Of a stretch of DNA of 64,000 nucleotides, positions 27,479 through 58,898 are shown piece by piece. The notes below the pieces were generated by a model, which was not told where the DNA came from, made no database searches, and saw only the letters and a list, made by a program, of their open reading frames with translations. The first letter of the stretch is position 1. Each line of letters starts with the position of its first letter. A program made the position numbers and the translations under genes. The stretch spans positions 248,001-312,000 of the IMG/VR virus record IMGVR_UViG_3300028735_000003; one strand, given 5' to 3'.

Positions 27479-28726
27479 TTATTCTACAAACTTAACGGTT
27501 TTTACTATGAAATCTAATGTATTTTCATCTCTGATTCTTGAGAATAAGATTTGTAAATATCCTGTTCTATTCATTTCTTGAATAATATCGTCTGGAGTAG
27601 ACTTTGTCTGAGATTGCAAAATATTATGTTTGATTATATCAAACACTTCCTGATCTGATAATTGAGCCTCTGGTTCAACTTCACGAATCCTGTCCAATAT
27701 AAGCGAGAGTTTTACATTATTCTCTGCCATCTCCATAAACTTCCTTCTATCTAAATCCGTTAAATTATCCCACTCCAATTTAGATTGATGCGCCAAGTAT
27801 CTTGCTTCTGATAGAAGCAACCAATTTGGAACTTCAAATTTATGATTTGCTACTAGAAATTTAGATACAACTTCATTAAGTTGCGTTTTAATAGCAATAG
27901 CCATTTTGGCTGCGGCTGATTGCGAAACAAATTCTTTTAGTTCGGCAAAACTGCTTTTACCTACCTTCAATGCCAATTCATCATTTAATGGCATTGGATT
28001 ATTTTTCGCCCCCATATTTAATGTTACTGAGAAATGAATTGTCTTTCCTACCAGAGATGGTAGCCCACCTTCTGGTACAACCAAGTTAAACTCTCTAGTT
28101 TCACCTATAGTCATGCCAAGCAAATTGTCATCAAACGCCGTCAATTGACTATGACCAACTGTAAGCATTTCTCCTTCCGCAGATAGACTATCAACCTTTT
28201 GCCCGTCTATGGAACCAATATAACTGATAATTACATTATCACCCTTCTGAACAAAATCAGTCTCTTCATATGGAAGAGAAGTACCGAATCTAACACGCAA
28301 TTCTTGAAGCATCTTCTCGGCAAGTTCTGCAGAAGTTATTGCTTCATGAGGTTTTGGCAGTTCGAAATCTTTATACGTAGTTAATTCAAAATCTGGCTTT
28401 ACAGCGAGATCAAAATCACACATAAACTTACCATCAGCCATTAACAATGAATTGAATCTTGGCGCTCCATGTGGGCGCAACTTCTTTTCGAATAGAGTAT
28501 TGTGATAAGCATCTTCTGCTAAGCCGCGCTTTAAAGATTCTTCTATTTGGTTTCTATAATACATCTTTATTGCATCTATAGTTGCCCTTCCCTTTCTAAA
28601 ACCTGGAACTGGAGCTTTCCTAAAAGCTTTCAAGACTTCTACCCTCTTATTGAGAATTTCTTCAGCATCAGCTATATAATGAACAGATAACTTACACGGC
28701 TCTATTTCTTTTATTTCAATATCCAT
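27479..28726 (-). CDS. tig: Trigger factor
   Basis: Ribosome-binding signature VPGFRKGR; FKBP-like GDNVIISYIGSIDG...LLGMTIGETREF; helical C domain. Confidence 0.9.
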   Translation of the reverse strand: MDIEIKEIEPCKLSVHYIADAEEILNKRVEVLKAFRKAPVPGFRKGRATIDAIKMYYRNQIEESLKRGLAEDAYHNTLFEKKLRPHGAPRFNSLLMADGKFMCDFDLAVKPDFELTTYKDFELPKPHEAITSAELAEKMLQELRVRFGTSLPYEETDFVQKGDNVIISYIGSIDGQKVDSLSAEGEMLTVGHSQLTAFDDNLLGMTIGETREFNLVVPEGGLPSLVGKTIHFSVTLNMGAKNNPMPLNDELALKVGKSSFAELKEFVSQSAAAKMAIAIKTQLNEVVSKFLVANHKFEVPNWLLLSEARYLAHQSKLEWDNLTDLDRRKFMEMAENNVKLSLILDRIREVEPEAQLSDQEVFDIIKHNILQSQTKSTPDDIIQEMNRTGYLQILFSRIRDENTLDFIVKTVKFVE

Positions 28727-28740
28727 AATTCCTCTTTATA

Positions 28741-29532
28741 TTAATCAGTTAACCAATTAACTTCACCATAAATACTTGTAGGGTCTACCATTTTTCTCCC
28801 TTCAGGGCATATATTTACATGATCACAGAATCTGCACAAATTTGTTGGGTTTGGTTTAAATTCTTTCTCGGCAAGTATTTGATCTGCGTATTGCACATAT
28901 TTGTCAGCTACATTTAATATCTCATTCTTCTGAAATTCAGTAGTAATATACTCAAAATTATGCCTCAATAGAATATATGATGCCCTGACCTTTTCTATAT
29001 TAGGGTCTTCTGTAACTATAACATACGCATATGTTAATAATTGAAAGAAATCGTTCTTTAGATATTTTTTATTTTTTGACGTCTTGTAATCACAGACGTG
29101 TATAATATTATCATCATCAAGCTGTACTCTGTCAATCATGCCATTTAATAAAACTTTTCCTCCGATTAATAATTCGAAATTTTTCTCACACGCCAAAACA
29201 TTTGCAGTTAAATTATTTTTCTTGTCATTAGTTACCAGTCGCAAATATTCATCAATAATATGCCAACATTCTTTTTTCATATCAGGCGTTAATTCAGATC
29301 TGTACAACTCTACAGCATCTTTAAATGCAGTAGACATAGTAATATTATATGGCGCTTGAGATCCATTGATATACACATTGTGGAAATTTTCCAATACTTT
29401 ATGACAAAATTTACCAATCGTATGAAAGTCCCAGGTCTTACGAGGTAATTTATCGATGTATGTATACTTATATTTTGCTTTACAATCTAGATAAGTTTTA
29501 GTTTTCGAGACACTAAGTCTAAATTCATTCAT
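28741..29532 (-). CDS. Cas4/RecB-like PD-(D/E)XK exonuclease
   Basis: SVSKTKTYLDC, GMIDRV, DYKTS, QLLTY, CRFCDHVNIC (four Cys, Fe-S type). Confidence 0.88.
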   Translation of the reverse strand: MNEFRLSVSKTKTYLDCKAKYKYTYIDKLPRKTWDFHTIGKFCHKVLENFHNVYINGSQAPYNITMSTAFKDAVELYRSELTPDMKKECWHIIDEYLRLVTNDKKNNLTANVLACEKNFELLIGGKVLLNGMIDRVQLDDDNIIHVCDYKTSKNKKYLKNDFFQLLTYAYVIVTEDPNIEKVRASYILLRHNFEYITTEFQKNEILNVADKYVQYADQILAEKEFKPNPTNLCRFCDHVNICPEGRKMVDPTSIYGEVNWLTD

Positions 29533-29612
29533 GACGTACTCTGTTAATTCAATCTAAATCCATCTAAATAATTTTGTTTTTGAGTTTAATTTAGCACAGC
29601 TCCAATATCCAT

Positions 29613-29643
29613 GTCAATTACCACCAGCACAAGTCTAGTGGCT
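29613..29643 (-). repeat. IS200/IS605 right-end hairpin, copy C, with tnpB tail relic upstream
   Basis: AGCCACTAGACTTGTGCTGGTGGTAATTGAC, 28/31 identical to copy B. Upstream reads VNQTNV, like VVNQPNA at the end of the TnpB at 37.9 kb. Confidence 0.75.
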
Positions 29644-29758
29644 TATCTCTGTATCTCATAAACATTTGTCTGATTTACCATAATCTTGGTGTTAAATCTA
29701 AAATAACCTCTCTTACTTAATTTACAATCCAATAACTTTAACTTGCAGAATTTCACGA

Positions 29759-30739
29759 TTAAAACAAAACTCTTCTTGTGAACGGGAGCCACTCAAATAC
29801 AAAACCGGCGCCAGCATTCTTAGATAGTGCAATATTGGAAAGATTTCCATCGAATACGCCGCCTGGTTGATATGGTGTCTTTGAAATAATCCATCTGTTA
29901 GCATGAGTATCCAAATAGTAATACGTCATAGTGTTGTCCCTGGGATTATAATGCGAACGTAAAAATGAGCCCATAACTGGAGGAGAATCTAAACCACTAT
30001 TGTAATAGCTGTTCCCATCTCTAACAGTTTCCGTATTTTCCAGAGAAAAGAATTCACGATTAATATGAGCAGGGTCATCTGGATTTTCTTTAGAAAAATC
30101 CTGAAATATAACAAAAGCTCTAGGATCGAATAGATTACTAAATTGATAGCTCTCTTCTAGCGGTGCTTCTGGAATCACAATTTTTGCTGTAGCCGGAAGA
30201 TTACCTACTGTTGGCTGCCCCTCAGCATCACGATTTGTATAGACAATATTGTAATTTTCTATATTGTACGGTTCATTAGTAAATCCCGTTTCATTACCCA
30301 TTCCATCATAGCCGCTGGCGATTTCAATTTTTTCTTGATTATCTACTGTAATTCCAGCATCACCAGGATTCAAGAAATGTGTATTTGGCTGTATTGGATT
30401 AGTTCCGAATGGATATAAACCAGGAATGTTTTCTCCAGATTGAGCATCCGTTGCGGAACGTGGCAATCTGGCATTTACTAAAATATCTGTCTGATATACT
30501 TCTGTAATAATTGGAGAAAATATACTACCATTAGTGGCAAGAACTCTAAGTTCTATTCTTAGCGAATTATTTGAAAAAAATAGCGGTGCAGTATATATGT
30601 CAGATAATAATGTAGGATCAGTTCCATCCAACGTATAGAATATCGTTGCCGGAATATTTGTAGATATAGTGACAGATCTAGGTATCCCTGATACTACCTG
30701 CTCGGTCGATTCTATAATTGTCACACTTATAATTGCCAT
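29759..30739 (-). CDS. Hypothetical protein with N-terminal FN3-associated/CHB_HEX_C-like beta domain, probably virion-associated
   Basis: TIFYTLDGTDPT motif. Confidence 0.65.
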   Translation of the reverse strand: MAIISVTIIESTEQVVSGIPRSVTISTNIPATIFYTLDGTDPTLLSDIYTAPLFFSNNSLRIELRVLATNGSIFSPIITEVYQTDILVNARLPRSATDAQSGENIPGLYPFGTNPIQPNTHFLNPGDAGITVDNQEKIEIASGYDGMGNETGFTNEPYNIENYNIVYTNRDAEGQPTVGNLPATAKIVIPEAPLEESYQFSNLFDPRAFVIFQDFSKENPDDPAHINREFFSLENTETVRDGNSYYNSGLDSPPVMGSFLRSHYNPRDNTMTYYYLDTHANRWIISKTPYQPGGVFDGNLSNIALSKNAGAGFVFEWLPFTRRVLF

Positions 30740-30861
30740 TTTAGTTTCATACGGATATTAGTATGTCAACATAACCATATATTGTGAGAAACCTATATAC
30801 AAATTTAGGCTATTCATTTTTAGGCCCTGAGCATCTATCTTAAACATATACGGTATTATAC

Positions 30862-31476
30862 TTATTGTTTCAACTTACTAAGCATATCATTTACCTGAAT
30901 AAGAAGATCGTCTTTTGTTCCATTATTATCGATAACAAAATCGAATTCACTATCATTTATAGACTCCTGCTCAACTTCACTGGCATGATTCATTTGCAAT
31001 TGCTCATTGCGATTGATACGAACCATAGTACATCCAGATTTCTTCATGCTATCGAACTCATTGCGAAATCTAACGTCCGTTACAATAAATAACAGATATC
31101 CTTTTTTCTCTGCTTTTTCCATCTTATAATTTAACGCATCTATCCAGATATCTTCTTTAAACCTTCTGCCAATCTCAGTTCCCAATTCTTGCAATAACAT
31201 TCTATAAGTAAGCGGCACTCCATTTTTAAATACACCTGGAATTTCTGCCGACCTATATTTCGATGGTCCATACAATGTTTGTCTTGTTGTTCTTGGGAAC
31301 ATTAAACGAATCATCTCTTTAATTGGATCCGCAAGTGCTGCCTTCTGTACAGCTTCAGTTCTTTTCGATACATGAGTCTTATCATATGGGTACATAGTCT
31401 TCAAAACATCCCATATTATATCTGCAAGAGTATCTTTTCCAGAATTCGCTTTACCAGAAATAGCTATCTTGTACAT
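30862..31476 (-). CDS. Deoxynucleoside monophosphate kinase
   Basis: IAISGKANSGKD, LADPIKE, LQELGTE, IVTDVRFRNE, HASE. Confidence 0.9.
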   Translation of the reverse strand: MYKIAISGKANSGKDTLADIIWDVLKTMYPYDKTHVSKRTEAVQKAALADPIKEMIRLMFPRTTRQTLYGPSKYRSAEIPGVFKNGVPLTYRMLLQELGTEIGRRFKEDIWIDALNYKMEKAEKKGYLLFIVTDVRFRNEFDSMKKSGCTMVRINRNEQLQMNHASEVEQESINDSEFDFVIDNNGTKDDLLIQVNDMLSKLKQ

Positions 31477-31483
31477 TATCCTC

Positions 31484-33715
31484 TCACCATGTCGAAACTA
31501 CTTGCGCCTTAGATACCATGTTTATATCCTGATTGACAAGTATAGCGTGAGAAAACTTATCCTTCAGCCTATCATTGTGTGTTATGATAAGTATAGTAAA
31601 ATCCTTTTGAAAAAACTTAACAATATCAGCGAACGCATCGACACCTGCCTTATCTAAAGACTGATCAATTTCGTCCAACAATAAAAACTTAATATCTGTA
31701 CCAATCATCTTTTGAAGTAAAAATGATAGTCCTAGCTTAAGACTAAAAATAACAGCTAATTTCATAGCGCCAGATAATTGTTCATACGATCGTTTTCTAC
31801 CATTCATCATATAATTAATCTCTAATGTATCGTCTTGACTTCCATCGCCCTTAGTTTTCTCAATTACAAATGATAATTGAAGACCTGGTTTTAATTGAGT
31901 TAAAATAGCATTTGCTTCTATTTGCAAATCATCTAACACATTTTGTATGATAAGATTTGGTATTCCTACCGACGAAAAAGCCTGAACTACATTAGGATAT
32001 ATAGAGAATTTTGCTTCTAATTTTTCGAGATTATTTTTAAGGGACTTTAGTTTGTTAATATTATCTTCAGATTGGGACACATTATACACAAGAACTGCCT
32101 TAATTGAATTAAGGTGTGCGATTTCTTTGTTAATTGAAGCAAGTTCAACATTTATATTTGCAAGATTGTTTTTCGCGGCGTCTATTTTAGACTGAATATT
32201 TTTTGCCTCTTCCAAAGAAGAGTTATTTAATTCATCTTTTACTTCATTTATTTCTCTTATTTTCTCGGATAAATCAGCAGTAAACTTATTTAAAAGTTGA
32301 TTGTATTCTTCATATATTACTTTTTTATCCTTGATTTCATTATTTTTGTTAGTTATCTGTATATTAATATCTTCCAATTTCTTCTTTGACAGATTTAAGC
32401 TATTAATTTCCTGTTGTAATTTTGAAATCTGTGCTGTCAAAGACACAACTGCTTCTTTAGAAGATTTTATGTTTAATTGGCAATCTGCGATTTCTTTTGA
32501 TACCTGGGCTTTGCATGCCTTTTTGTGTTCTTCTGTGAGCGGTTGACGGCAGTGTTTGCAAATATTATCATCTGGAACAGGTATCTTAAGTTCCTCATAT
32601 CTAGCAACATTTGACTGAATATTGAGATTATGTTTAGTAACCTCTTCTTTCAATAAATTTACATTATCGGACAAAATATCTATTTGCGCATAATCTAACG
32701 ATGCTAATTTCACTTGTATGGCTTTAAGTTCTTCTATCTCTCTAACAATAATCTGTGCTGACTTGATAACATTTGATTTTTTTATTTGGTATTCTTTAAT
32801 AGAATTCTCAAGTTTAGATTTATCCGATTGTAAATTCTTTTCTTTTAATAGTAGTTCTGAAAACTTACTTTCAAGTACAGAATGCGCACTAGTTAGATCA
32901 CTAATTCTTAGAACCTCTTGATCTCTATTATACGAGATATCTCGAAGTAAAGATTGTTTATCACTAATCTTAGTATCGACCTCAGATAATTGTATCTTAA
33001 ATGAAGATAAATCGGATTCTGGATCTTTCAGGCTATCTATTAATGTTTTGTGTTTTTCAATATCTTTTGATATTACTGCCGCTTTATCTTTGGCTATTTT
33101 TTCTAATTTCGAGTAAATTCCAAGCTCCAGAGCATCTTTTAAGATTCCTTTGCGCTTGGCGGGGGTAACAGTACTAAGACCAGTGAAATCATTTTGTATA
33201 AAGTGCAGTGTACTTCTAAACGCACTAAAATTAATCTTGACCAACTTACCTAATTCTTTCTCTGTATCAGACGCTCTACGCCCACCAATATCCTTCCAAT
33301 ACTTAGAAATTAGTTTGTCATCACTTATTGGGACATAAATATCATCAATCTTTAAAGTATGATATACCTCATCATCTGGTCCACCAATCGCGTTTCTCTG
33401 CCATAAAGAAATGTCTGTTGCCCCCTTTCTTGTTCTAGATCTTGACAAACGATACTCTTGACCGTCTATCTCAAAATCAAAAACTATCTTACATAATGAG
33501 GCGTCCTCTCGAATTATCATATCTAGGTTAACATCTGCTTGGTTAAACAATACATATTCTATTGATTTAAATATACTTGTCTTTCCAACTCCGTTTGAAT
33601 ATAGATCATTATTTTCGATTTTCCCAACTATTAAAGCCGAATTAAATTTAGTAAAATCTATAAAGCCATTCGAATAGCACATAAAGTCTTCGATATAAAG
33701 TCTAAGTGGCTTCAA
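31484..33715 (-). CDS. sbcC: SbcC/Rad50/gp46-like ATPase
   Basis: NGVGKTS, FIQNDF, CKHC hook within coiled coil, LSGA signature, LLLDE, ITH. Confidence 0.92.
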   Translation of the reverse strand: MKPLRLYIEDFMCYSNGFIDFTKFNSALIVGKIENNDLYSNGVGKTSIFKSIEYVLFNQADVNLDMIIREDASLCKIVFDFEIDGQEYRLSRSRTRKGATDISLWQRNAIGGPDDEVYHTLKIDDIYVPISDDKLISKYWKDIGGRRASDTEKELGKLVKINFSAFRSTLHFIQNDFTGLSTVTPAKRKGILKDALELGIYSKLEKIAKDKAAVISKDIEKHKTLIDSLKDPESDLSSFKIQLSEVDTKISDKQSLLRDISYNRDQEVLRISDLTSAHSVLESKFSELLLKEKNLQSDKSKLENSIKEYQIKKSNVIKSAQIIVREIEELKAIQVKLASLDYAQIDILSDNVNLLKEEVTKHNLNIQSNVARYEELKIPVPDDNICKHCRQPLTEEHKKACKAQVSKEIADCQLNIKSSKEAVVSLTAQISKLQQEINSLNLSKKKLEDINIQITNKNNEIKDKKVIYEEYNQLLNKFTADLSEKIREINEVKDELNNSSLEEAKNIQSKIDAAKNNLANINVELASINKEIAHLNSIKAVLVYNVSQSEDNINKLKSLKNNLEKLEAKFSIYPNVVQAFSSVGIPNLIIQNVLDDLQIEANAILTQLKPGLQLSFVIEKTKGDGSQDDTLEINYMMNGRKRSYEQLSGAMKLAVIFSLKLGLSFLLQKMIGTDIKFLLLDEIDQSLDKAGVDAFADIVKFFQKDFTILIITHNDRLKDKFSHAILVNQDINMVSKAQVVSTW

Positions 33716-36751: not shown

Positions 36752-37996
36752 GAAAACCTCGCAAGTAGACCCACGGCTTTAGCCGTGGGAGGAATTGCGG
36801 ATTATAAAAGTTAATCAGCTTATTATTTTTATTTTCTAATAATGATATATATATCTGTGATGCGAAGAACTTATAGTTTTTATTTATCCGCTCCTGATGG
36901 GTTTTTAGATTTCCTAAAAACCTGCGCAGATATTTATTCGCATCATGTCGAGTGGGCTTTCGAAAATAAATCGACCAATAAAGTTAAAGCTCATCAAGAT
37001 TTATATCAGAAATTACGATCTCTTTATCCTGATATTCCTTCTAATATCCTGCAAGCTACAAGAGATCAGGCATTAGAGGCAGTTAGAAAGTTAAAATTCA
37101 AAATTAAACCGAAAAAGAAACCATATTCTGCAGTTAGATATGATGTAAGAACTATTTCTCTTCGTGGTAATCTATTAACTTTCTCTTGGTCAGGTAAGAG
37201 AATCAGAACTCTAATTAACTTACCTAAATATTTTAAACAATATCAAAACTGGACGATGAAGTCTGGAACTATTGGATATGATCAACAAAAAAAGAAACTT
37301 AAAGTCAGCTTAATTTTCGAAGCTCCAGATACTCTTCCTATTAAAAACTCTAATCGAATAGTAGGAGTAGATAGAGGATTATATAATATCGTCTCGTTGT
37401 CGGATGGTCAATTATATAATGCGAAACAAGTAAGAAAACAAAAACGAAAGTTTCTATATGTTAAAAGACAACTTCAAGCAAAAGGCACTCATTCTGCCAA
37501 GAGAAAATTACAGAAAAGGTCAGGACGAGAAAAGCGGTTCAGCTTGAATATTAATCATATTATTTCGAAATGGTTAGTTAATCAACCTTATGATATTTTT
37601 GTTCTTGAAGACCTTAAAGGAATAAGGAAACAGAAAAAAGCAAGAAATTAAACGGTTGGTTATCTAATTGGACTTTCTATCAGTTAGAAAAATTTTTAGA
37701 ATATAAAGCATTAGCATTAGGAAAACAAGTAGTTAAAGTTGATGCAAGATATACTTCTCAAAAATGTTCTAATTGTAGAATTATTGAAAAGTCTAATAGA
37801 AATAAGTCGAAATATATTTGTAGCAAATGTGGTTACATAGAACATGCAGATATTAATGCTGCTAAAAATATTAAGACAAATTATTTTATCTCGTTAGCTG
37901 AAAAGAATAACGAGCAGGCTGTTGTCAATCAGCCAAACGCAGCCAAAACTGATGTTTTGAGCAGCAAGCCCACGACTTTAGTCGTGGGTTATTGAC
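36752..37996 (+). mobile_element. IS200/IS605-family tnpB-only element with exact ends
   Basis: Left hairpin CCCACGGCTTTAGCCGTGGG, right hairpin CCCACGACTTTAGTCGTGGG then TTATTGAC. Inserted after TCAT. Removing it restores the def stop overlapping the trx start (ATGA). Confidence 0.92.
36842..37995 (+). pseudogene. tnpB: TnpB with single -1 frameshift near 37640
   Basis: VGVDRG, FVLEDL; in the -1 frame KKLNGWLSNWTFYQL...CSNC...CSKCG...HADINAAKNI. Confidence 0.9.
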
Positions 37997-38532
37997 CGAA
38001 TACTCCCACAACATTTCTTAAATTTTTTACCTGACCCACATAAACATATATCATTTGGAGCTTGTTTATTCTTTGCAATAATAGGGGATAACTTGGGAGC
38101 CGCTCTGTCCATAAACAATGTTCCATATATATGATCTATTTCGTGTTGACAAACTATAGAGACAATACCGGTAGCAATAAAGCTATAAGGATATACTAGA
38201 TTGTTTGTCACATATATTTCTTTATATCTGATCGTATCTTCACTTCTACCTGGAAAAGATAAACAACCTTCTTGTGTAAATATTATTGGATCAAAAGCTT
38301 TTTCTATCTTACAATTTACAAGGTTTATATTTACCCCATCCAACCTAACAATTGCAATCTTTTTTGATAAACCAATTTGTGGCGCAGCCAAACCAATACC
38401 GCTACGACCTATTTTATTAGCTTCCATTAATTCTTTATCAAGAAGCTCAATTAAAGATGCGACTTCTTCTTCCGTCACATCTTCACATGGCGCCCTTAAT
38501 ATATTTTCGTCGTTTATTATAATCATAATCAA
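37978..38532 (-). CDS. def: Peptide deformylase with C-terminal SEC-C motif
   Basis: GIGLAAPQIG, EGCLS, QHEIDH; PNDICLCGSGKKFKKCCG. The stop codon is supplied by the IS end. Confidence 0.93.
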   Translation of the reverse strand: MIMIIINDENILRAPCEDVTEEEVASLIELLDKELMEANKIGRSGIGLAAPQIGLSKKIAIVRLDGVNINLVNCKIEKAFDPIIFTQEGCLSFPGRSEDTIRYKEIYVTNNLVYPYSFIATGIVSIVCQHEIDHIYGTLFMDRAAPKLSPIIAKNKQAPNDICLCGSGKKFKKCCGSIRSITHD

Positions 38533-41392: not shown

Positions 41393-41746
41393 TTATACAT
41401 CTTTAGACTTCTTCTCAGAAGAATGAGTGTTGACGCAACGTCCTTTCGTACACTCATCCATTGCCTTTCTGCGCGATTCATTGCGCTTCCTTCTGCGTTT
41501 ATCAGAAGGCTTCTCATAAGTTCGTTTCTCCTTATAAGAAGATAATATTCGTTCCTTTTGAACAAGCGCCCTAAATGCTTTTAGAGCCTTTTCAAAGTTA
41601 TTTCCATAAACTTTGACTTCAAGTGGAGTAGCCTGTACTGCATCACTTATTGAATGAGTAGACGAATCTCGGCTTTCTGTGTCACCTCCCTTCAACGCCT
41701 TTTCTGAATTGTCATTACCACGTTTATTATGTTTGTGTTCTTTCAT
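41393..41746 (-). CDS. rpsU: Ribosomal protein bS21 with terminal extensions
   Basis: EVKVYGNNFEKALKAFRALVQKERILSSYKEKRTYEKPSDKRRRK. Confidence 0.88.
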   Translation of the reverse strand: MKEHKHNKRGNDNSEKALKGGDTESRDSSTHSISDAVQATPLEVKVYGNNFEKALKAFRALVQKERILSSYKEKRTYEKPSDKRRRKRNESRRKAMDECTKGRCVNTHSSEKKSKDV

Positions 41747-41776: not shown

Positions 41777-43090
41777 TTATTTATTGAAATATTTTTCAGT
41801 TTTAATAACGTTACTACCATTTAAAATATTTTTATCCTTTATTAAGGACTTAAGCGCCGCATTTATATCAGAAGCTATAGGAGACTTGCGATTGTGTGAT
41901 AATGCTTCGAACATAGCTGAAATATAAAGCTCTTTCAAATATGCATAAGAAAAATTGTTTTGAACAGCATATCTTGCAAGATCTTTAGCCTTCGCCATAT
42001 TGATCATATTACCAAACCATCTCTTAATATATATATAAGCCATTTCTTGAGTTGGTAAAGGAATTTCGAATTTTCTATCAAATCTTGATGGTCTATCAGT
42101 AATATTCTTTTTTAATTTTGTAATATCATTGGCAGTAGCTATAACAAGCAAACCGTTTGTCGCAGATATACCATCCATTAGGTTTAAGAAAGATGATGTA
42201 TCAATATTCTCTAAAAGAGAATCTAAATCCTCAAAATATAACAAAGATGGACTTTGTCTTTCGGCGTAATCAAATGCATCACGAACCATACTGGTTGTTG
42301 CATCAGAAACGATAGTTACAGGTTTAAAATTATAAACAGATATAATTGTCTTAATTATAGAAGTCTTGCCATTGCCTGGTTTACCATACAACAGAATTCC
42401 GCGCTTCCAAGGAATCTTGTTTTGTATATAAAATTCGCGTGATGACAAAAAACTTTCAACTAAGCCCCTTAAACTATTCTTAATAGAATCAGGTAAGAAC
42501 AGATCATCCCAAGTAGAACTTCTATCATAAGGTATATCATCATCGCCAATAACCCTAATATGTAGATTAGATCTATCTCTGTCTTGCACCCAACTATCAA
42601 ACCTATTTCTCATAGAGACATAAGCTTCATAGTTAGATTCAGAAACCAATACAAAAAAACTTATTTCATCTTCATTTTGATTTCCTTTATGGAAAAGAGC
42701 AGCATGAATAAACTCAAGACCTTTTCCTTTAATTAAGAATACCCCTTGAATAAAGAATTTTTCGAAATCGTGTTCTGTTTTCCATGAAATTATTGAATCC
42801 TTGTACACACACTCAACGGTCAAATTTTGCTCTTTACAAAACTGTAAAAATTGCCCATCAATAATTATTCTATTTTGAACAAACTTATTTATATTATTAC
42901 GATCACTTAGTAATGATAATGAACCTTCCAGTACCCAATTCATCAGATCTATAAAGTTAGCTGTTGGTCTGGGCGCCCTAGAAGAAAAACGTCCAGTAGA
43001 TGATAAATCTGCAAGATATTTCTCAGTTAAGTGTTCCTGGCGTTCTAACTCTTCTGAAGATACATAAACTAAATTATTATTATTTTTCAT
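41777..43090 (-). CDS. AAA+ ATPase (classic clade) with unknown N-terminal domain
   Basis: KRGILLYGKPGNGKT, LLYFEDLD, IATAN, RPSRFDR. Confidence 0.9.
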   Translation of the reverse strand: MKNNNNLVYVSSEELERQEHLTEKYLADLSSTGRFSSRAPRPTANFIDLMNWVLEGSLSLLSDRNNINKFVQNRIIIDGQFLQFCKEQNLTVECVYKDSIISWKTEHDFEKFFIQGVFLIKGKGLEFIHAALFHKGNQNEDEISFFVLVSESNYEAYVSMRNRFDSWVQDRDRSNLHIRVIGDDDIPYDRSSTWDDLFLPDSIKNSLRGLVESFLSSREFYIQNKIPWKRGILLYGKPGNGKTSIIKTIISVYNFKPVTIVSDATTSMVRDAFDYAERQSPSLLYFEDLDSLLENIDTSSFLNLMDGISATNGLLVIATANDITKLKKNITDRPSRFDRKFEIPLPTQEMAYIYIKRWFGNMINMAKAKDLARYAVQNNFSYAYLKELYISAMFEALSHNRKSPIASDINAALKSLIKDKNILNGSNVIKTEKYFNK

Positions 43091-49840: not shown

Positions 49841-50422
49841 TCATATTACATGATCAATTATGCCATATTTCAAAGCTTCATTTGGTTCCAGAAATAAATC
49901 CCTTTTGCAATCTTCCTTTACTTTATTCAAATCATTTCCAGTACTATCTGCTAACATCTTCATAAGTTTATCATTATTCTTCTTAGCGAATTCAAAATAA
50001 TTTTTCGAATTAACCTGGTCATCTCCAGGTATAGGAAATTCGAATTGAATACCATGGATCATGATTTTAGAATTTTTGTAAGCATATCTTTTGCCCTTAG
50101 TACCGGATGCCAATAATATCGCTGCGGCAGAAAACGCTTTACCTAAACATATTGTTTTTACAGGGGCTCTGATCATATTAATAACGTCATAAATTTGCAC
50201 TAACGCATCTCCATCTCCACCATTTGAATGTATATAAATACTAATATCATCGGTTGGGCTCATATTATCATAATACAATAATAAAGCCGACAATTCTGAT
50301 GCCACCTCTTTTGTAATACCTTCCTTAAGAAATATTATTCTGTCTTTTGACAAAAAAACATATGATGTGTCATATTTTGTGTTCTTTAATAGTAAAAGAT
50401 TCTCTGCTTCATATAATTTCAT
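49841..50422 (-). CDS. clpP: ClpP protease subunit, catalytic triad intact
   Basis: YIHSNGG, CLGKAFSAAA (Ser), IMIHG (His), KRDLFL (Asp). Confidence 0.92.
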   Translation of the reverse strand: MKLYEAENLLLLKNTKYDTSYVFLSKDRIIFLKEGITKEVASELSALLLYYDNMSPTDDISIYIHSNGGDGDALVQIYDVINMIRAPVKTICLGKAFSAAAILLASGTKGKRYAYKNSKIMIHGIQFEFPIPGDDQVNSKNYFEFAKKNNDKLMKMLADSTGNDLNKVKEDCKRDLFLEPNEALKYGIIDHVI

Positions 50423-50434: not shown

Positions 50435-51019
50435 TTATTTCCTAAAAGGAACCACCTTATCTATAAACCCTCTTTTAAGTGCTTGACGACTATCCATAAA
50501 AACAAGTCTTTCATATTTAGACATTGCTTGTTTTAATGATATATTAGTTTTTCTTGCAATTATATCCATCATCTTTTTATTATCGCTTAAAGAATGGTTT
50601 AGCATGGTTTGAGCATCAGTTATATCAGAATGATGTACCCAGCTATTAACTAACTGCCCTGCGCAAATAATAGAATTCTTAGTTGCCAACCTCATACCAG
50701 GTGTTCCAGCAACCAATAAAATGACTGCCTCTTTCATAGCTGAGCCGATACATACAGTCTCTATTGGAGAATCGATCATAGTAATCATATCATAAATTGC
50801 CAAAGCACTTCTTATGTCTCCTCCTCTAGAATTAATAAATATGGTTATTTTATTATCAGAATCTTCACTATCTAGTAATAATAATGTGGCTGATATATCT
50901 GCAGCCATGTCATCATCAATATCTCCAGATACGAATAATATTCGATCATTAGATAACTTCTGAAACACATCAATAGATACTTCGCCTTCTTCAGTATTTT
51001 CAGTTACTATAGTATTCAA
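50435..51019 (-). CDS. ClpP paralogue lacking all three catalytic residues (ClpR-like)
   Basis: DRILFV, FINSRGG; CIGSAMKEA (Ser to Lys), NSIICAGQ (His lost), ERLVFM (Asp lost). Confidence 0.88.
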   Translation of the reverse strand: MNTIVTENTEEGEVSIDVFQKLSNDRILFVSGDIDDDMAADISATLLLLDSEDSDNKITIFINSRGGDIRSALAIYDMITMIDSPIETVCIGSAMKEAVILLVAGTPGMRLATKNSIICAGQLVNSWVHHSDITDAQTMLNHSLSDNKKMMDIIARKTNISLKQAMSKYERLVFMDSRQALKRGFIDKVVPFRK

Positions 51020-51381
51020 CTTTGTTCCCTATTCCTCTGTTTTTCCTCTATCTCTCGATCTTCTGCACAATCAACACATATTTCGACGTAAGGATTGAAT
51101 AACAATCTTTTCTCTGGAATATCTTCACCACAATCATCACAAATTCCATATGTGCTGTTTTTCAGTTTAGCTAATGCGGTCTCAATCTGAACAAGCTTTT
51201 GAGCATTTCGTGTACTTAGTTGGTTTTGCATTTCAATTAATAAATTACCCTGGATTTCGTCATATTCATCTCCGTCAGTGTCAATCTCTATATCCTGTTC
51301 CATATTAGCTGTAATTATAAGCTGACGTTTCTGCGCCAGCAATTCTTCTTCAATCTTCTTAAGAAAAGCTTTACTTAACAT
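51016..51381 (-). CDS. dksA: DksA/TraR-family C4 zinc-finger protein
   Basis: Coiled-coil tip DEYD (DxxD), YGICDDCGEDIPEKRL...CVDCAE. Confidence 0.9.
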   Translation of the reverse strand: MLSKAFLKKIEEELLAQKRQLIITANMEQDIEIDTDGDEYDEIQGNLLIEMQNQLSTRNAQKLVQIETALAKLKNSTYGICDDCGEDIPEKRLLFNPYVEICVDCAEDREIEEKQRNREQS

Positions 51382-52094: not shown

Positions 52095-52097
52095 TAA

Positions 52098-52559: not shown

Positions 52560-52561
52560 AG

Positions 52562-53740: not shown

Positions 53741-53884
53741 ATATCCACACTTACTTTGGTAGCCACAAAATTTTCTCTATGATATGTATATACTAACTCC
53801 CCCTATTATATATCCCCATGCGTTTGTCGAGAGTCAGTTCAGGTAATTTCAAATAATAATAGCTATTTTTTATAAAAATGCCAC

Positions 53885-54523: not shown

Positions 54524-54573
54524 TATACTAATAAACACATATCTTTTACAAAATACGATCATAAGCAGGAATC

Positions 54574-54840
54574 ATGGATAAATACCATAAAGTTACAGCA
54601 CTATATTTAGCTGCTGAAAAATTAGTTGGTTATGATACTCCAGCCTATGATCTTCATACCGCATTATTAAACAAAGTATTGCTTAAGTATAAAAATTTAG
54701 AGGAGTCTACAATCAAGATGTCCTTAGCCATCGAAAAAGATTTTCTTAAATTCTCTAAGATGGTATACAATTGTTTTGAAGATGAAGGTAAGCTAACTTT
54801 AGGACTTGATGATATAATAATGTCAAGTGTGATGAAATAA
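54574..54840 (+). CDS. Hypothetical protein
   Basis: 88 aa; AGGA RBS. Confidence 0.6.
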   Translation: MDKYHKVTALYLAAEKLVGYDTPAYDLHTALLNKVLLKYKNLEESTIKMSLAIEKDFLKFSKMVYNCFEDEGKLTLGLDDIIMSSVMK

Positions 54841-54865
54841 CAGCAATTATATAAGAGGATATACA

Positions 54866-55207
54866 ATGAATACTGACAAAGAGGTTTTACAAAAACTATT
54901 TAAGATTGCCAAAAATCAACAGAAGATTATTAGAAAACTTGCTCAAACGTCTTCTCAAGTGCAAGATATTAGAGCAGAAGTTAACAACCTTATCGTATCA
55001 CTTGGTTCTAAAGTTCCAAGAGGAACTGTATGTTTAAAGGCTTATTTTTATCCGATTGAGAATATAGTAGATTCAACAATTAAATTACAAAACGCCCAAC
55101 CATTGGATGAGAATAATAAAAAAATAAGAGCTATATTAGCTTCAGCTATCGCTGATATGAAGAAAATACCTGTGGGTAATGTCAAGATTATTTTAGCATT
55201 AGGTTAA
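54866..55207 (+). CDS. Hypothetical protein
   Basis: 113 aa; GAGGA RBS. Confidence 0.65.
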   Translation: MNTDKEVLQKLFKIAKNQQKIIRKLAQTSSQVQDIRAEVNNLIVSLGSKVPRGTVCLKAYFYPIENIVDSTIKLQNAQPLDENNKKIRAILASAIADMKKIPVGNVKIILALG

Positions 55208-55506
55208 TCAGAATACTTGTTTGAAAATATAGCAATATTTCGTTGCATTAATGCCGTATGTAATGCATCAAATACGTTTATATTGTCTTTCAATGAAATT
55301 GATGTAATTGACAATAAAATCTCGCCCATAATGCGAGATTTTGCTATATTTTTGTCTTCCGAAGAAATATCCGATTTTTTATCTATCATAGAATAAAGAT
55401 TTAACTTCATCGTTAACTCGTCTATGATGTCCAATATGCTTTCATCATAGGAATTATTGGAGTTAAATTCTTCGCACTTTTCCCATAATTCTTCGAAATG
55501 TATCAT
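55204..55506 (-). CDS. Possible MazG-like all-alpha NTP-PPase fold, degenerate
   Basis: MGEILLSITSISLKDNINVFDAL resembles the LGDxLF...xIDxEEAL pattern; weak. Confidence 0.45.
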   Translation of the reverse strand: MIHFEELWEKCEEFNSNNSYDESILDIIDELTMKLNLYSMIDKKSDISSEDKNIAKSRIMGEILLSITSISLKDNINVFDALHTALMQRNIAIFSNKYSD

Positions 55507-55508
55507 TT

Positions 55509-55700
55509 TTAGTCGTCATCCTTTTTATCCATCGTGGCAATCTGTAGTTGTTCATCTCCTTTATCAGATACAAATACTAAAAATACTGCACCCTCAGAAC
55601 AATCAATCATTACTGGGCACTTAAGCTTTCCAACATAAAATGTTTGCCCATCCACATCTTTTCTAGCTTTTAAATCAATAGTTAGATTATTATTAGACAT
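55509..55700 (-). CDS. Small hypothetical protein
   Basis: 63 aa; GGAGG RBS. Confidence 0.65.
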   Translation of the reverse strand: MSNNNLTIDLKARKDVDGQTFYVGKLKCPVMIDCSEGAVFLVFVSDKGDEQLQIATMDKKDDD

Positions 55701-55713
55701 ATAACCTCCAATA

Positions 55714-56024
55714 TCAAGTATTTTTTATGTATTCTTTCTCTTTCATTTTTTGTTCTAATGCTTCACTAGAATTTTTCATAATAAATCCGGCTTTGTTATT
55801 TTACGCATTTAATATATAAATTGGACTTTTGATAACAGTGATTTTACAATATCAGTCGCAGATAATGGTCCAGGATTTGTTGCGTGGAAAATACTAGGAA
55901 CAAGCTCATGTACGTTTAGAATATAATTAATTTGTCGTGTGTTTAGTCCAACACGATCTGTGATTATCTGATAATTCATATGGTTGCTAATAAAACCACT
56001 ACCACCACGTGTGAAAATTCTCAT
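55714..56024 (-). pseudogene. RmlB N-terminus fused by deletion to RmlD-like C-terminal fragments
   Basis: MRIFTRGGSGFISNHM (GGxGFIG Rossmann relic); IFHATNPGPLS; later frame KAGFIMKNSSEALE. Confidence 0.55.
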
Positions 56025-56030
56025 TAATAT

Positions 56031-56226
56031 TTAGCCTTTAACGAAAGTGCAATCCAAATCTTCTTTATTGGTATACATTATTTATAATATCAGTGGTCTC
56101 ATACTCACCAGGCGCTAGGCTTCAGCGAGCTAAAGAACTTAAAAAATGCCCGCCAAATAAAGAATTTAATGGAAGCAATCTACTGCCAGTCCCGCTTGTT
56201 AATATGATACCTGTACTTACTTGCAT
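56031..56226 (-). pseudogene. RmlA (glucose-1-phosphate thymidylyltransferase) relic with large internal deletion
   Basis: GIILTSGTGSRLLPL (vs GIILAGGxGxRLxP), then frameshifted PGEYETTDIINN (vs RGExEITD). Confidence 0.7.
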
Positions 56227-56251
56227 GATATACAATATAACATGTCTTTTG

Positions 56252-56323
56252 CATCCCTAGCAGGACTCGAACCTGCATATATCAGTTTAGGAAACTGACG
56301 CCTCTCCTTTAGGCTATAGGGAC
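56252..56323 (-). tRNA. tRNA-Arg(CCU), CCA not encoded
   Basis: Acceptor GTCCCTA/TAGGGAT (G1:U72), D stem GCCT/AGGC, anticodon arm TCAGT-TTCCTAA-ACTGA, T arm GCAGG-TTCGAGT-CCTGC. Confidence 0.92.
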
Positions 56324-56358
56324 ATTATAATTTATCTAATTAATTTACTAATGTCTAA

Positions 56359-56658
56359 TTATTTGAATTTTCTATACAAATGTTCATACTGTCTTGCTAA
56401 TTTATATAGGTCAACACCAATATCATATTCTGAAGAATCTGGTCCATTTTCAATCATAGTCTTAGCTATATTAATTAAAGCCGTCATTGGAACATTAATT
56501 TGTATAAGATTATCTCTAATGTTGTTTATTAGATCATCATTAATTGGACTCTTATACACTTTTTCTTCAAAAGATTCCGCGAGCGACCACAAACGTTTTA
56601 GATTATACATGTCAATTACTCTGATCACAAAGTTGATTGCTTGTTTCTGACTTTCCAA
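56359..56658 (-). CDS. Hypothetical protein (start uncertain)
   Basis: 99 aa ORF with TTG start. Confidence 0.45.
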   Translation of the reverse strand: MESQKQAINFVIRVIDMYNLKRLWSLAESFEEKVYKSPINDDLINNIRDNLIQINVPMTALINIAKTMIENGPDSSEYDIGVDLYKLARQYEHLYRKFK

Positions 56659-57330
56659 GACATTCGGTTAATTGGCACACAACCTGCTGTACCTTTTTAG
56701 CAGTATGATTAAATATCGCTGCAAAGCGTTAAGATAGGTTAAAACTGTTGCGGTGCCTCAATTTTTAGTGATATGGCTCTTTAAATATTCGTATCTATTT
56801 TGTTAGATACAAGTATAGTAGTAGATTTTTCACCACCAAATAGACCATTAATAGACAATTGTGAAAACAATATAATGATAACCACACGATATACGAATTA
56901 GAACAAATCACATGATCGTATTAATAGAGATAGCCAAAACACCAAAAACAATTAGTTCAGTATATCTTTTTACTATTTTTCTAAAACTAAAAGCTGAATA
57001 AGAAAAATATTAAATAGAATTTGTACACTTAGTTTTATGGACTACGACACAGCCACTATACCAATTAAGCTTTCAAAGCTAAATATATAATTAGAGTGTT
57101 GCATCCAGTTATTAACTATTTCTTTATGTTCATTTGCAAATAAATTAAACGTAAATTAAACGCATAGCTCTGTAAACTAAAAACATTGTGTTATTTAGAA
57201 TGATCTCTATTATGAACTTATGAACACTTGATAGTCTTTCAATCTCCAACGACACTATATAGGCTTATTGTAAATAATTTTTAAAATCTTATATGAAAAG
57301 CAGCATCTATTCATCAACAAGGAAATCGTA

Positions 57331-57651
57331 TTATCCTACCCACCAGTGACTAATGTTTTGTAACTCCTTGGGAATATCGATTTTTGAGATCACTACACTT
57401 TCATCAACGAAATCAGCCTTATACCACCATTGTTTAGGTACTGGAGTATAAACACTAGCACGATCATGAACTACAATTTCCTCTATCAATGCATAGTTGT
57501 AATAATGTTCGAAAAAATCGCCACAATTTGACATAATAGTAGCTTCAGCCGCCTCAAAATTATCAAACAATGACCATAATCTTGAACCTTTTGTAGTATA
57601 TTGGGGCAGAACAATACATATAGCTCCCGCTGCATATAGCTCCCGCTGCAT
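57331..57651 (-). CDS. Hypothetical protein with 16-bp duplication at the 5' end
   Basis: Original start probably ATG 57664 (MNKIYAAGAICIV); the duplication shifts the frame but creates a new in-frame ATG. Confidence 0.6.
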   Translation of the reverse strand: MQRELYAAGAICIVLPQYTTKGSRLWSLFDNFEAAEATIMSNCGDFFEHYYNYALIEEIVVHDRASVYTPVPKQWWYKADFVDESVVISKIDIPKELQNISHWWVG

Positions 57652-57654
57652 ATA
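57617..57654. repeat. Perfect 16-bp tandem duplication CATATAGCTCCCGCTG x2.4
   Basis: Read directly. Confidence 0.9.
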
Positions 57655-57680
57655 TCTTGTTCATGTTAAACACCAATTAT

Positions 57681-58210
57681 GTGAACTACTTCTGGCTAAA
57701 GCCAGAAGCTTCCACAATCGTTGCCGACTGTGTACATCGTTTAGAAACGATGGCTTGTCCCAAGCAAAGAATATTTTTAGCAGCATTTTCATCTCGGTCA
57801 TAACTATTTCCACATGTACAACTTATTGTTCTATCTGATAATTTCAGATTATGAATTGCGCTAATTTGGCATTTCTTATTGCCTTATTCAATCTCGTATA
57901 ATTTTCTTCTGACATATATTTTACTGACAAGTTTTCTGCAAAAATTGTATCATATTTACGAGATAGGTTTTTAGAAACCTTATGCTGAAAGTCATTGATT
58001 TTTCTAACTTTCGCATCATACAACCTTTGCTTCGCTCGTCTTAATCTACGGTACCTTCGTGATCCTTTCTTTTTATTATCTATGTTAGTTTTATCTGTTC
58101 TATACATTTCTTGCCTACTGTAATATATAACGAACTATTGATAAAGATTTTAAAATTTTTAGCAGCATTCATCCTCCACCTAAAGGTATAGGATTTCTGC
58201 TGATTTTAGG
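57681..58210 (-). mobile_element. Internally deleted IS200/IS605 tnpB element (about 530 bp)
   Basis: Right end GAAGCTTCTGGCTTTAGCCAGAAGTAGTTCAC; left hairpin TCCTATACCTTTAGGTGGAGGA; fragments IFAENL and RDENAAKNI. Confidence 0.85.
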
Positions 58211-58509
58211 TTAAAACACCTTTTATTGTTGGCTCGTTCCATTCCAAGAACAGTCATTTGATCAATCATCAAATTAACCGTTTGCAAATTCTTTGCAGCT
58301 TGCAACGCAACATCTTTATCATCAGAATTCAAATAGAATAACATATCATGTCGATATTTGATTAACGTATAATATTTGCCACGCTGGCAATAATTCAGTG
58401 GTTGAGCAATTTTTTGTTCTATTAATGTTGGCTCAGTATTTGGTGGGTGCTGCAATCTTGTATGAGAACAACCTAACAGTGATAATAAAATTATGAGGGC
58501 ATATCTCAT
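58180..58509 (-). CDS. Predicted lipoprotein
   Basis: MRYALIILLSLLG|C lipobox; the stop codon lies inside the IS left-end hairpin. Confidence 0.65.
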   Translation of the reverse strand: MRYALIILLSLLGCSHTRLQHPPNTEPTLIEQKIAQPLNYCQRGKYYTLIKYRHDMLFYLNSDDKDVALQAAKNLQTVNLMIDQMTVLGMERANNKRCFNLKSAEILYL

Positions 58510-58536
58510 ATAATAATACCAAATTAGTAGTTGTTA

Positions 58537-58898
58537 TGGTGGAGGATCGGGGGATCGAACCCCGGTCTTGAATACTTCGCGATTAAACTCATTCACAAAC
58601 TTAGTTGATGTTTATCTGTCATCAGCACCAGTGAAAGAATTCGCTCTAACTGGCTAGTTACTGTTCATTTCGAATGTTAAATCCGTAACCGACAAAACAT
58701 TCTATCCTTAGTGTGTTGAGCATTCATCAGATACCAAGAATATCTCTCCTAGAACACTCCAATTAAGCAGCTTGTGCCATTGGAACAAATGCATTGTCGT
58801 TTGCATTTATACGTTGATTGCTTTTTAACGAGTCCCTGCAATCATCCCCGGTTTGCATTTAAATCGCTATTTACCCAATCGAAACCAAATTATCCCCC
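58537..58898 (-). ncRNA. ssrA: tmRNA; tag peptide (A)ANDNAFVPMAQAA
   Basis: 5' GGGGGAT pairs with ATCCTCC-ACCA (G3:U70); T arm GGTTCGATCCC; resume context ATAAAT-GCA AAC GAC; tag ends GCT GCT TAA. Confidence 0.95.

Follow-up and report, generated by a model that had tools for sequence, protein, structure and literature searches.

The window analysed here, a stretch of 64,000 nucleotides corresponding to bases 248,001-312,000 of the IMG/VR virus record IMGVR_UViG_3300028735_000003 (G000:C1:248001-312000), encodes a set of bacterial-type elements comprising the ribosomal protein bS21, a peptide deformylase (PDF), a trigger factor (TF), a DnaJ protein, a pair of ClpP-family proteins, a DksA-like protein, a transfer-messenger RNA (tmRNA) and a tRNA. 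Comparison with related viral records reveals that this set is shared by a lineage of very large phages, and, to judge from the sequences, it is vertically inherited under purifying selection and acts on or next to the ribosome. The reading that we favour, and hold to be fairly probable, is that the phage retunes or augments, rather than replaces, the co-translational processing and quality control of its host while making a very large proteome. All eight elements, as named by an initial annotation of this DNA, are present in the window, and all of them lie on the minus strand. Below, coordinates prefixed C1 refer to the whole record and all others to the window, and genes were read by genetic code table 11 throughout.

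Genomes of this kind have already been published and machine-annotated, and the set itself has not been analysed before. New here are its conserved co-occurrence, a dead ClpP paralogue, a fusion of deformylase to a SEC-C motif, a stand-alone M41 protease domain and the pairing of an AAA ATPase gene with that of bS21.

Conservation, clustering and selection of the set

The search covered 14 large related records in full, among them six with a completeness of 97-100% and one, of 451,956 bp, bearing direct terminal repeats. Counts over 15 genomes given below refer to the window phage plus these 14 relatives. The initial annotation had suggested a survey of co-occurrence in large phages, and among these 14 relatives the set proves to be shared: bS21, the two ClpP genes, DnaJ, PDF and the DksA-like gene are each found in 14/14, and the tmRNA in 13 of the 14, the sole gap being a 45%-complete fragment. 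A methionine aminopeptidase (MAP) gene, which lies outside the window, is likewise present in 10/14 records and in 6/6 of the complete genomes. The 451,956-bp genome illustrates the arrangement: the tmRNA is followed after ~11 kb by a DksA-ClpR-ClpP run, after a further ~9 kb by the AAA ATPase and bS21, after ~3.5 kb by PDF, after ~11 kb by TF with the M41 domain just past it, and after ~12 kb by DnaJ, amounting to 52.8 kb in all. The complete relatives share both this order and this spacing.

The confinement of at least six of the eight loci to 52.8 kb of 452 kb, or 12% of the genome, has P = 0.003 under random placement, a null that is generous, since the genes of the replication region probably form one temporal module. 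Nevertheless, this clustering is one of the observations that are difficult to reconcile with the set being an uncoordinated collection, that is, independently useful auxiliary genes of a very large phage which happen to share an early or replication region and whose grouping is a reader's own. Such a view can point to the fact that only DksA - ClpR-like - ClpP and AAA - bS21 are true neighbours, the remaining loci being 3-13 kb apart with replication and repair genes between them and the MAP and release factor genes far off, as well as to the assorted translation genes that huge phages generally carry (Al-Shayeb et al. 2020). Against it, the whole set occurs together in every complete genome examined, with order and spacing fixed, six of the eight loci fall in that 12% of the genome, and TF, PDF and MAP are kept jointly down to 28% identity, for which chance is hard to credit. 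These three proteins are known to act at a single ribosomal site. Hence, we regard the uncoordinated collection as rather unlikely.

The constraint on the individual genes was estimated from pairwise ratios of nonsynonymous to synonymous substitution rates (dN/dS), which come to 0.25 for TF, 0.24 for both PDF and ClpP, 0.26 for both the dead ClpP paralogue and DksA, and 0.32 for the M41 domain. These values are similar to the 0.22 of the nuclease genes nearby, which indicates that the set genes are under the same constraint as core replication genes. The initial annotation had allowed that the proteins might prove non-functional; with catalytic and binding motifs intact, and with dN/dS values of 0.21-0.32 like those of the replication neighbours, they instead appear to be functional.

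Phage origin of the contig

The record is a linear sequence of 353,765 bp with a completeness of 79% according to CheckV, implying a full genome of ~450 kb. Its GC content is 33% and nearly every gene lies on the minus strand, GC content and strand bias both being even throughout the window. One and the same contig carries genes for a tail sheath (C1:194311-197115), a portal (C1:243321-246377) and a large terminase of 1,333 residues (C1:246453-250454). The N-terminal part of the terminase occupies positions 1-2454 of the window (minus strand) and contains intein and LAGLIDADG insertions; it was recognised via PHROGs, a Pfam scan for Terminase_6N being negative. The same intein-type PHROG cross-matches recur in a helicase and an ATPase (C1:147926-150454 and C1:319519-321660), and with terminase, helicase and ATPase all bearing such matches the genome is unusually intein-rich.

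The probable source run of the record is from a microbial mat, and other DNA runs containing this sequence come from a hot spring, in addition to a weak match in a rhizosphere run. An independent contig of 2,084 bp from a hot-spring metagenome, 99% identical, bridges o106, TF and the PD-(D/E)XK nuclease gene.

IMG/VR places six of the relatives, of 267-481 kb (G003, G004, G005, G008, G010 and G012), in its 'provirus' class. Yet the completeness of four of these (G004, G005, G010 and G012) is 97-100%, and direct terminal repeats are found in a syntenic relative. The many bacterial-type genes may mislead the provirus caller, and some of these 'provirus' calls may be so driven.

This label, borne by 6/14 related records, and the bacterial type of the set genes are what could be cited for a bacterial contig, an integrated element or an assembly chimera, with the translation genes being simply those of a host. 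We find this scarcely credible and have rejected a bacterial or chimeric contig on the strength of the hallmark genes, the relative with terminal repeats and the circular genomes that hold the set. Terminase, portal and tail sheath share the contig with it; the 451,956-bp relative holds the full set, as do published circular genomes of 437-462 kb. Furthermore, nothing bacterial-like in the phage collection exceeds ~31% identity to the TF, a pattern-limited scan of 185,579 species genomes gave 0 relatives of it, the independent hot-spring assembly joins it to phage neighbours, and neither GC content nor strand bias changes along the window. The assignment to a phage, for which a bacterial contig or chimera had been named as the principal threat, is thus upheld by the hallmark genes, by synteny in 41 viral contigs, by the relative with terminal repeats and by the independent bridging assembly.

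Trigger factor, deformylase and methionine aminopeptidase

The TF gene (27479-28726, minus strand) encodes a full-length protein of 415 residues in which the N-terminal ribosome-binding domain, the FKBP-type peptidyl-prolyl isomerase domain and the C-terminal arm domain are all matched (PF05697, PF00254 and PF05698; Pfam Trigger_N 2e-20, FKBP_C 2e-5, Trigger_C 4e-12). It passes the NCBIfam tig equivalog model TIGR00115 with 209.1 bits (cut-off 180.2), and its family profile recovers E. coli TF (1w26) with E = 1e-28. An AlphaFold2 (AF2) model with a pLDDT (predicted local distance difference test) score of 86 finds full-length TFs as its best Foldseek matches, namely 1w26, the ribosome-bound 2vrh (TMq, the TM-score normalised to the query, 0.64) and 3gty. 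The signature loop, GFRxGxxP in the family, takes the form GFR[KP]G[KR]A[ST] in this clade, with G42 and R44 invariant and F43 nearly so. The protein is predicted to dock on host ribosomes.

A word-based protein search, which sees proteins of 0.55-1.75 times the query length and would therefore miss TF fusions and fragments, recovered at least 120 clusters of 415-residue TFs with 61-98% identity, many of which lie on contigs of 204-467 kb. Twenty-five of these TFs were aligned, and a query of IMG/VR with the alignment yielded 41 loci, exact-peptide patterns from a single TF having been too strict (0 matches). An exhaustive HMMER search of 1.84 billion representatives found 164 TF clusters (at 50% identity) with E <= 1e-30, and identity to the query among these falls in a continuous gradient from 59% to 26-30%. 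The SbcCD - PD-(D/E)XK - TF - DnaE context is retained at the three judgeable distant loci, with TF identities of 41%, 32% and 28%, the contig of a fourth distant member (36% identity) being too short for its context to be seen. At the 28% locus the neighbours are diverged to a comparable degree from those of the window: DnaE is 37-46% identical, PD-(D/E)XK 38%, SbcD 35% and SbcC 29%. TF is thus a long-standing core gene that a broad lineage of megaphages has passed on vertically, rather than a recent capture. The low identity of TF-like matches in GenBank phages, the lack of a TF fold in a viral structure library and the empty pattern-limited scan of species genomes, all detailed elsewhere in this text, are in keeping with this.

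The initial annotation had singled out TF as the least commonly reported member of the set, and this holds well. It goes unmentioned in the main text of Al-Shayeb et al. 2020; literature searches over 8.4 million full texts, whose coverage excludes subscription journals, returned no paper on a phage-encoded TF; and no TF fold occurs in BFVD, a library of viral structures. Among GenBank phages, TF-like matches have at most 31% identity and derive mostly from short unannotated records that resemble bacterial carry-over, with 0 members of the present clade.

The PDF gene (37978-38532, minus strand; Pfam Pep_deformylase 2.8e-28) has the catalytic motifs GIGLAAPQ, EGCLS and HEIDH intact (GxGxAAxQ, EGCxS and HExxH in the family), and these are conserved in 23-25 of 25 clade members. 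Its C-terminal tail, CLCGSGKKFKKCC, forms a SEC-C-type zinc motif (Pfam SEC-C 1.2e-7), and a tail of this type is present in all 25 clade PDFs. With 89.4 bits it does not reach the cut-off of TIGR00079 (103.95), and it is a divergent member with the extra SEC-C tail. A literature search for a deformylase-SEC-C fusion produced nothing relevant. The type I MAP gene is located at C1:135134-135955 and passes TIGR00500 with 222.8 bits (cut-off 171.35).

In bacteria, TF, PDF and MAP form a triad at the ribosome exit site, on uL23, uL29 and uL22. All three are encoded by the phage with catalytic and binding motifs intact, and the predicted TF structure superposes on ribosome-bound E. coli TF. The phage triad differs in being virus-encoded, in the divergence of its TF (~21% identity to E. 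coli TF when the structures are aligned by Foldseek), in a TF signature loop that lacks the final Pro, and in a PDF that ends in the SEC-C zinc motif. In E. coli deformylase, it is a plain C-terminal helix that makes the ribosome contact. A phage deformylase as such has a precedent in cyanophages: as represented by the citation of Frank et al. 2013 in Al-Shayeb et al. 2020, that enzyme is apparently active and was proposed to sustain translation during infection. The PDF of the window differs from it in its fusion to SEC-C (25/25 clade members) and in being accompanied by MAP and TF.

The TF neighbourhood, the M41 domain and DnaJ

On one side of TF, all 41 loci have the genes for DnaE, an M41 domain and two small open reading frames (ORFs). 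On the other side, in counts limited by the reach of the fetched flank, are found the PD-(D/E)XK nuclease (40/41 loci), SbcCD (34-36), thioredoxin (31) and PDF (29). The M41 gene (26183-26863, minus strand) codes for 226 residues in which HEAGH and GSSDD, with its conserved Asp, align to the zinc ligands of E. coli FtsH; HE[AS]GH is conserved in 42/42 orthologues, and the gene is present in 41/41 loci. The AF2 model (pLDDT 87.5) has as its top Foldseek matches exclusively the protease domains of FtsH, AFG3L2 or YME1. Lacking both a membrane anchor and the AAA module, this protein is not an FtsH but only the protease domain of one. The two small ORFs, of 92 and 106 residues, occupy 26867-27467 (minus strand) between the M41 domain and TF; they have no Pfam match and no assigned function, yet occur at 41/41 related loci with dN/dS values of 0.21-0.25.

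The type I DnaJ gene (15419-16357, minus strand) is real and lies in the window, although ~11 kb outside the interval 27479-58898 to which the initial annotation had assigned the set. Matches to DnaJ (8e-18), DnaJ_C (3.8e-25) and DnaJ_CXXCXGXG (1.2e-6) in Pfam are accompanied by an HPD motif at residue 33, four CxxC zinc-finger motifs, of which two are canonical and two degenerate, and the C-terminal domains. Its linker is short and not Gly/Phe-rich, and its score of 202 bits against TIGR02349 does not reach the cut-off of 377. The gene is flanked by those for a DnaG-type primase and RuvC.

This genomic setting raises the question of whether the chaperones and proteases might work for the phage replisome or for the assembly of virions instead of for quality control of nascent chains, with DnaJ remodelling helicase-primase complexes, TF and the M41 protein acting on replication proteins, and ClpP/ClpR turning over regulators. 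The position of DnaJ between primase and RuvC, and that of TF and M41, which are locked between DnaE and PD-(D/E)XK/SbcCD at 41/41 loci and remain so even at 28% TF identity, would fit such a role. Precedents also exist, in that lambda requires the host DnaJ and DnaK, which remodel helicase-primase complexes, and in that TF can act as an assembly chaperone, as in the T. maritima TF-S7 complex (PDB 3gty), itself one of the Foldseek matches. However, we know of no role outside translation for bS21, deformylase, methionine aminopeptidase, RF2 or tmRNA, the phage TF retains the ribosome-binding loop residues (G42 and R44 invariant), its closest structural matches include the ribosome-bound 2vrh, and adjacency of phage genes often reflects timing and not function. 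Taken together, we judge service to replication or assembly to be improbable.

Two observations on the genes around TF may be recorded here. DnaE (DNA polymerase III alpha; 21996-26096, minus strand) is encoded in two adjacent ORFs of 914 and 418 residues set 99 bp apart. The former ends in an N-intein-like block (...CTINHKFRV...) and the latter begins with a C-intein-like block of ~41 residues (...KYIGDLQTYDLEVDHLDHQFYLSNGVLTSN, then S), resembling the split DnaE intein of cyanobacteria; a close relative has an unbroken DnaE of 1,166 residues, and a distant one has a LAGLIDADG-bearing intein at this place. At the locus L100, whose TF is 32% identical, a Cpn10/GroES gene (L100:1827-2114, plus strand) lies among the small ORFs between TF and DnaE, and constitutes an additional chaperone in the TF neighbourhood of that sub-lineage.

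The DksA - ClpR-like - ClpP trio

Two adjacent ClpP-family genes follow a gene for a DksA-like protein. The order DksA, dead ClpP, ClpP is fixed, and the DksA gene lies directly upstream of the Clp genes in 14/14 records; a gene for HU is also found near the latter. The ClpP proper (49841-50422, minus strand; Pfam 1.7e-47) has an intact triad, Ser98-His123-Asp175, as identified by alignment to solved ClpPs, and S-H-D or S-H-E is found at these positions in 15/15 genomes. In the upstream copy (50435-51019, minus strand; Pfam 1.6e-42), alignment to solved ClpPs, including that of H. pylori (2zl0), places Lys, Gly and Leu at the positions of the catalytic Ser, His and Asp, and in 15/15 genomes none of the three catalytic residues is retained. 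This protein has the ClpP fold but does not merit the name of an active ClpP; by its residues it is ClpR-like and catalytically dead. The 'ClpP pair' of the initial annotation thus stands as two adjacent genes of the family, but comprises one intact protease and one dead paralogue.

On gene content the arrangement is of the putative ClpP/ClpR type. In the ClpP/ClpR systems of cyanobacteria and plastids and the ClpP1P2 systems of actinobacteria and Listeria there are likewise adjacent paralogues; here one has the full triad and the other none of it, and both are conserved. The phage pair differs in being phage-encoded, in lacking a Clp ATPase and in its coupling to a DksA-like gene, and its hetero-oligomer is a putative one. 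A prediction of the complex of ClpP with its ClpR-like partner scored 0.01 in a run without controls, which weighs neither for nor against binding.

Since ClpP-fold head maturation proteases are common in phages, and NCBIfam has models dedicated to them, we also considered whether the pair might be a capsid (prohead) maturation protease with no part in protein quality control. Both proteins do match head-maturation models weakly, at 43-46 bits where the cut-off is 120, but reach ~154-156 bits against the cellular ClpP subfamily; for the protein at 49841-50422 the two values are 46 and 156 bits. Moreover, the Clp genes have those for DksA and HU as neighbours and are ~50 kb away from the end of the window nearest terminase and portal, and farther still from the tail sheath, and a dead yet conserved copy is the pattern of ClpP/ClpR heteromers and not of prohead proteases. 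We consequently deem a prohead function highly improbable.

The first gene of the trio encodes a DksA/TraR-family C4 zinc-finger protein (51016-51381, minus strand; Pfam 1.9e-14), whose finger reads CDDC...CVDC. Its acidic coiled-coil tip, DTDGDE[YT]DE[IV]Q, presents DxxDx[IV] in place of the DxxDxA of the family, and it misses every curated NCBIfam cut-off.

tmRNA, tRNA and release factor

A one-piece tmRNA with an encoded 3' CCA was detected by ARAGORN at 58537-58898 (minus strand) and matches Rfam RF00023 with 117 bits (gathering threshold 47) over positions 1-374 of 374. Scanned permissively with Rfam, the stretch 55700-60500 adds only a sub-threshold 'permuted tmRNA' match that overlaps its 5' part. 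The encoded tag, ANDNAFVPMAQAA, is SsrA-like and ends in AA, and related tags are ANDNAFAMAA and ANDNAFAPMALAA. The tRNA of the set is a tRNA-Arg(CCT) at 56251-56323 (minus strand; ARAGORN, with 62 bits to the Rfam tRNA model), and the record as a whole has nine tRNA genes and the one tmRNA.

The release factor gene, at C1:94134-95261 (minus strand), is of RF2 type, with SPF and GGQ motifs, and was found in 5/5 records tested. In the window phage it has a single in-frame TAA at C1:95019-95021, which might stem from an error in sequencing, from a nonsense mutation or from regulated read-through; the genes of relatives are uninterrupted and code for 367-388 residues.

Peripheral to the set are a nucleotidyltransferase resembling CCA-adding enzymes (6164-6934, minus strand; Pfam PolyA_pol head domain 3.7e-12) and a Thg1-like tRNA 5'-guanylyltransferase that adjoins the tmRNA (59146-59955, minus strand; Pfam Thg1 1.8e-18, Thg1C 8e-4). 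CCA-adding enzymes maintain the 3' ends of tRNA and tmRNA. Together with the two tRNA-Ile(TAT) genes of the genome, these proteins suggest a phage-side repair of tRNA and tmRNA ends.

bS21 and its AAA ATPase partner

The bS21 gene (41393-41746, minus strand; Pfam 4e-15) passes TIGR00030 with 53.2 bits (cut-off 28.95). The S21 core comprises residues 43-95, and is preceded by a basic, conserved N-terminal extension of ~40 residues and followed by a variable C-terminal tail. A KKAxKGGE[ST] motif in the extension aligns in all 14 sequences (the window and 13 relatives). Directly preceding bS21 in every case is a gene for a classic-clade, YjoB-like AAA ATPase (41777-43090, minus strand; Pfam AAA 1.4e-17), whose best sequence match in the PDB is B. 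subtilis YjoB (7w42, 2.3e-33), and which is present in 14/14 records with 59-70% identity. By these affinities it is a candidate phage unfoldase or chaperone.

Viral ribosomal proteins are said to have been the subject of work by Mizuno and colleagues in 2019. Phages of Bacteroidetes also encode bS21, which was proposed to act as a substitute in host ribosomes (Chen et al. 2022, ISME Commun 2:31). Those phages are of at most 331 kb and have bS21 in a structural or late module, and the report does not mention TF, deformylase, tmRNA, ClpP or DnaJ. The bS21 of the window differs in that it adjoins the AAA ATPase gene and lies in the replication region.

Published relatives

Huge phages with an N-extended S21, PDF, tmRNA together with SmpB, release factors and CCA-adding enzymes were described by Al-Shayeb et al. 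2020 (Nature 578:425; PMC7162821), whose main text has no trigger factor, Clp, DnaJ, DksA or chaperones. The supplementary GenBank files of that study do label these genes in genomes of the present clade. BM_PHAGE_CIR_35_55 (437,772 bp, circular) has a 415-residue 'Trigger factor' whose first 44 residues match the TF family of the window, in addition to methionine aminopeptidase, DnaJ and a ClpP beside a second ClpP with Asp at the position of the catalytic Ser. SR-VP_PHAGE_40_16 (426,196 bp) has TF, methionine aminopeptidase, DnaJ, ClpP and 'DksA1'. The table of Al-Shayeb et al. names SR-VP_PHAGE_40_16 and the GD_PHAGE_CIR_35 genomes 'Judaphage', and their trees place BM_PHAGE_CIR_35_55 in the Judaphage group along with an IMG contig of sample 3300010403, which is also the sample of our TF locus L046. 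Judaphage, with genomes of 426-462 kb and ~35% GC, are of the same type as the window phage and very probably belong to its clade. The source of the window is an uncultivated myovirus-like megaphage, of a lineage that corresponds to or includes Judaphage. One difference is that the huge phages of that study are listed with SmpB, which the clade of the window lacks.

Other features of the genome

Past the tmRNA and Thg1 genes, at 60392-63760 (minus strand), two S-adenosylmethionine-dependent methyltransferases and three family-2 glycosyltransferases are encoded in a row. Outside the window, a 934-residue protein (G000:C1:152932-155736, minus strand) matches the phage tubulin PhuZ weakly (8e-8). 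Three IS605 OrfB/TnpB-type genes or remnants were noted, at 36842-37651 (plus strand), 4630-5373 (minus strand) and 57331-58509 (minus strand). The first of these, a transposase gene beside that of the deformylase, is missing from all 41 related loci and hence private to this genome; the last, between tRNA-Arg and the tmRNA, appears to be a TnpB broken into pieces by decay, and translation of 57300-58520 yields no readable protein.

Missing partners and a proposed model of host-dependent action

The initial annotation spoke of a near-complete nascent-chain pipeline, which is too strong a description, even though in one respect the set exceeds what that annotation listed, extending to MAP, RF2, the M41 protease domain and the YjoB-like AAA ATPase. 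No SmpB is encoded in this record or in 14/14 relatives, inclusive of the six complete genomes; HSP70/DnaK, GrpE and GroEL are absent from this record and the complete relatives; no unfoldase of the ClpX/ClpA type is present in the record or the 14 relatives, which have just weak AAA_2 matches to an ATPase of ~370 residues; and an EF-Tu-type GTPase is missing from this record and the complete relatives, one relative excepted. One of the two ClpPs is, moreover, inactive, and the genes do not form one operon. What the phage has are ribosome-proximal, ATP-independent parts without the engines, so that each product must dock on a host machine. We infer that the set is no autonomous pipeline and that the phage proteins plug into host machines.

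A possible course of events can be outlined. Most set genes lie on one strand in a region of replication genes, and for this reason their expression is probably joint and falls before or during replication of the genome. bS21, deformylase, aminopeptidase and TF would dock on host ribosomes, keeping N-terminal processing and co-translational folding from becoming limiting while the host ceases to renew its own factors, and they may also bias processing and folding towards phage products. The phage DnaJ would recruit host DnaK. The phage tmRNA would use host SmpB, EF-Tu and alanyl-tRNA synthetase to release stalled ribosomes, and host ClpX would degrade the tagged products, with either host ClpP or a phage heteromer of ClpP/ClpR type. 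The latter could operate with ClpX or ClpA of the host, or possibly with the AAA ATPase of the phage, and the DksA-like protein would act on RNA polymerase. Of these steps, we infer ribosome docking, a ClpP/ClpR heteromer, routing of the tag and co-regulation from the gene complement, and the 'coordinated takeover' of translation quality control proposed in the initial annotation is too strong a term for what that complement suggests.

Several observations weigh against this interpretation. The set is not one operon, being interspersed with replication and recombination genes over ~53 kb, and the methionine aminopeptidase and release factor genes are >100 kb from the rest; given this scatter, co-regulation is putative. 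PDF, DnaJ, the two ClpPs and DksA score under their NCBIfam equivalog cut-offs, so that altered specificities are possible, and the clade has Ser or Thr where the GFRxGxxP signature of TF ends in Pro. No RNA run is among the sequencing runs that contain this sequence. The scan of the 185,579 species genomes gave no clue to the host; restricted as it was to TF-clade peptide patterns, it is not proof of absence. The gene-taxonomy profile in Al-Shayeb et al. 2020 (PMC7162821) is 81% 'unknown'.

A bolder form of the proposal would have the set be the ribosome-exit toolkit of an ancient lineage, in which TF, a SEC-C-tethered PDF, aminopeptidase and an N-extended bS21 make host ribosomes phage-specialised, the tmRNA tag is routed to a phage protease of ClpP/ClpR type, and the whole network runs on host ATPases and is required for the very large proteome. 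This we view as doubtful, and prefer the more modest reading that the phage retunes or augments the machinery of its host.

The translation genes of huge phages are known mostly for initiation, tRNA supply and elongation. The present lineage adds the steps that come after peptide-bond formation, namely N-terminal processing, co-translational folding, rescue and degradation, and has kept the set down to 28% protein identity. If the phage proteins sit on host ribosomes, viruses would remodel the exit port and not just the decoding side. In that event the phage TF, the deformylase-SEC-C fusion and the ClpP/dead-ClpP pair would offer natural, diverged variants for studying a shared docking site, and the presence of adaptors in the absence of ATPases and SmpB would mark those components of host proteostasis that are limiting in infection.

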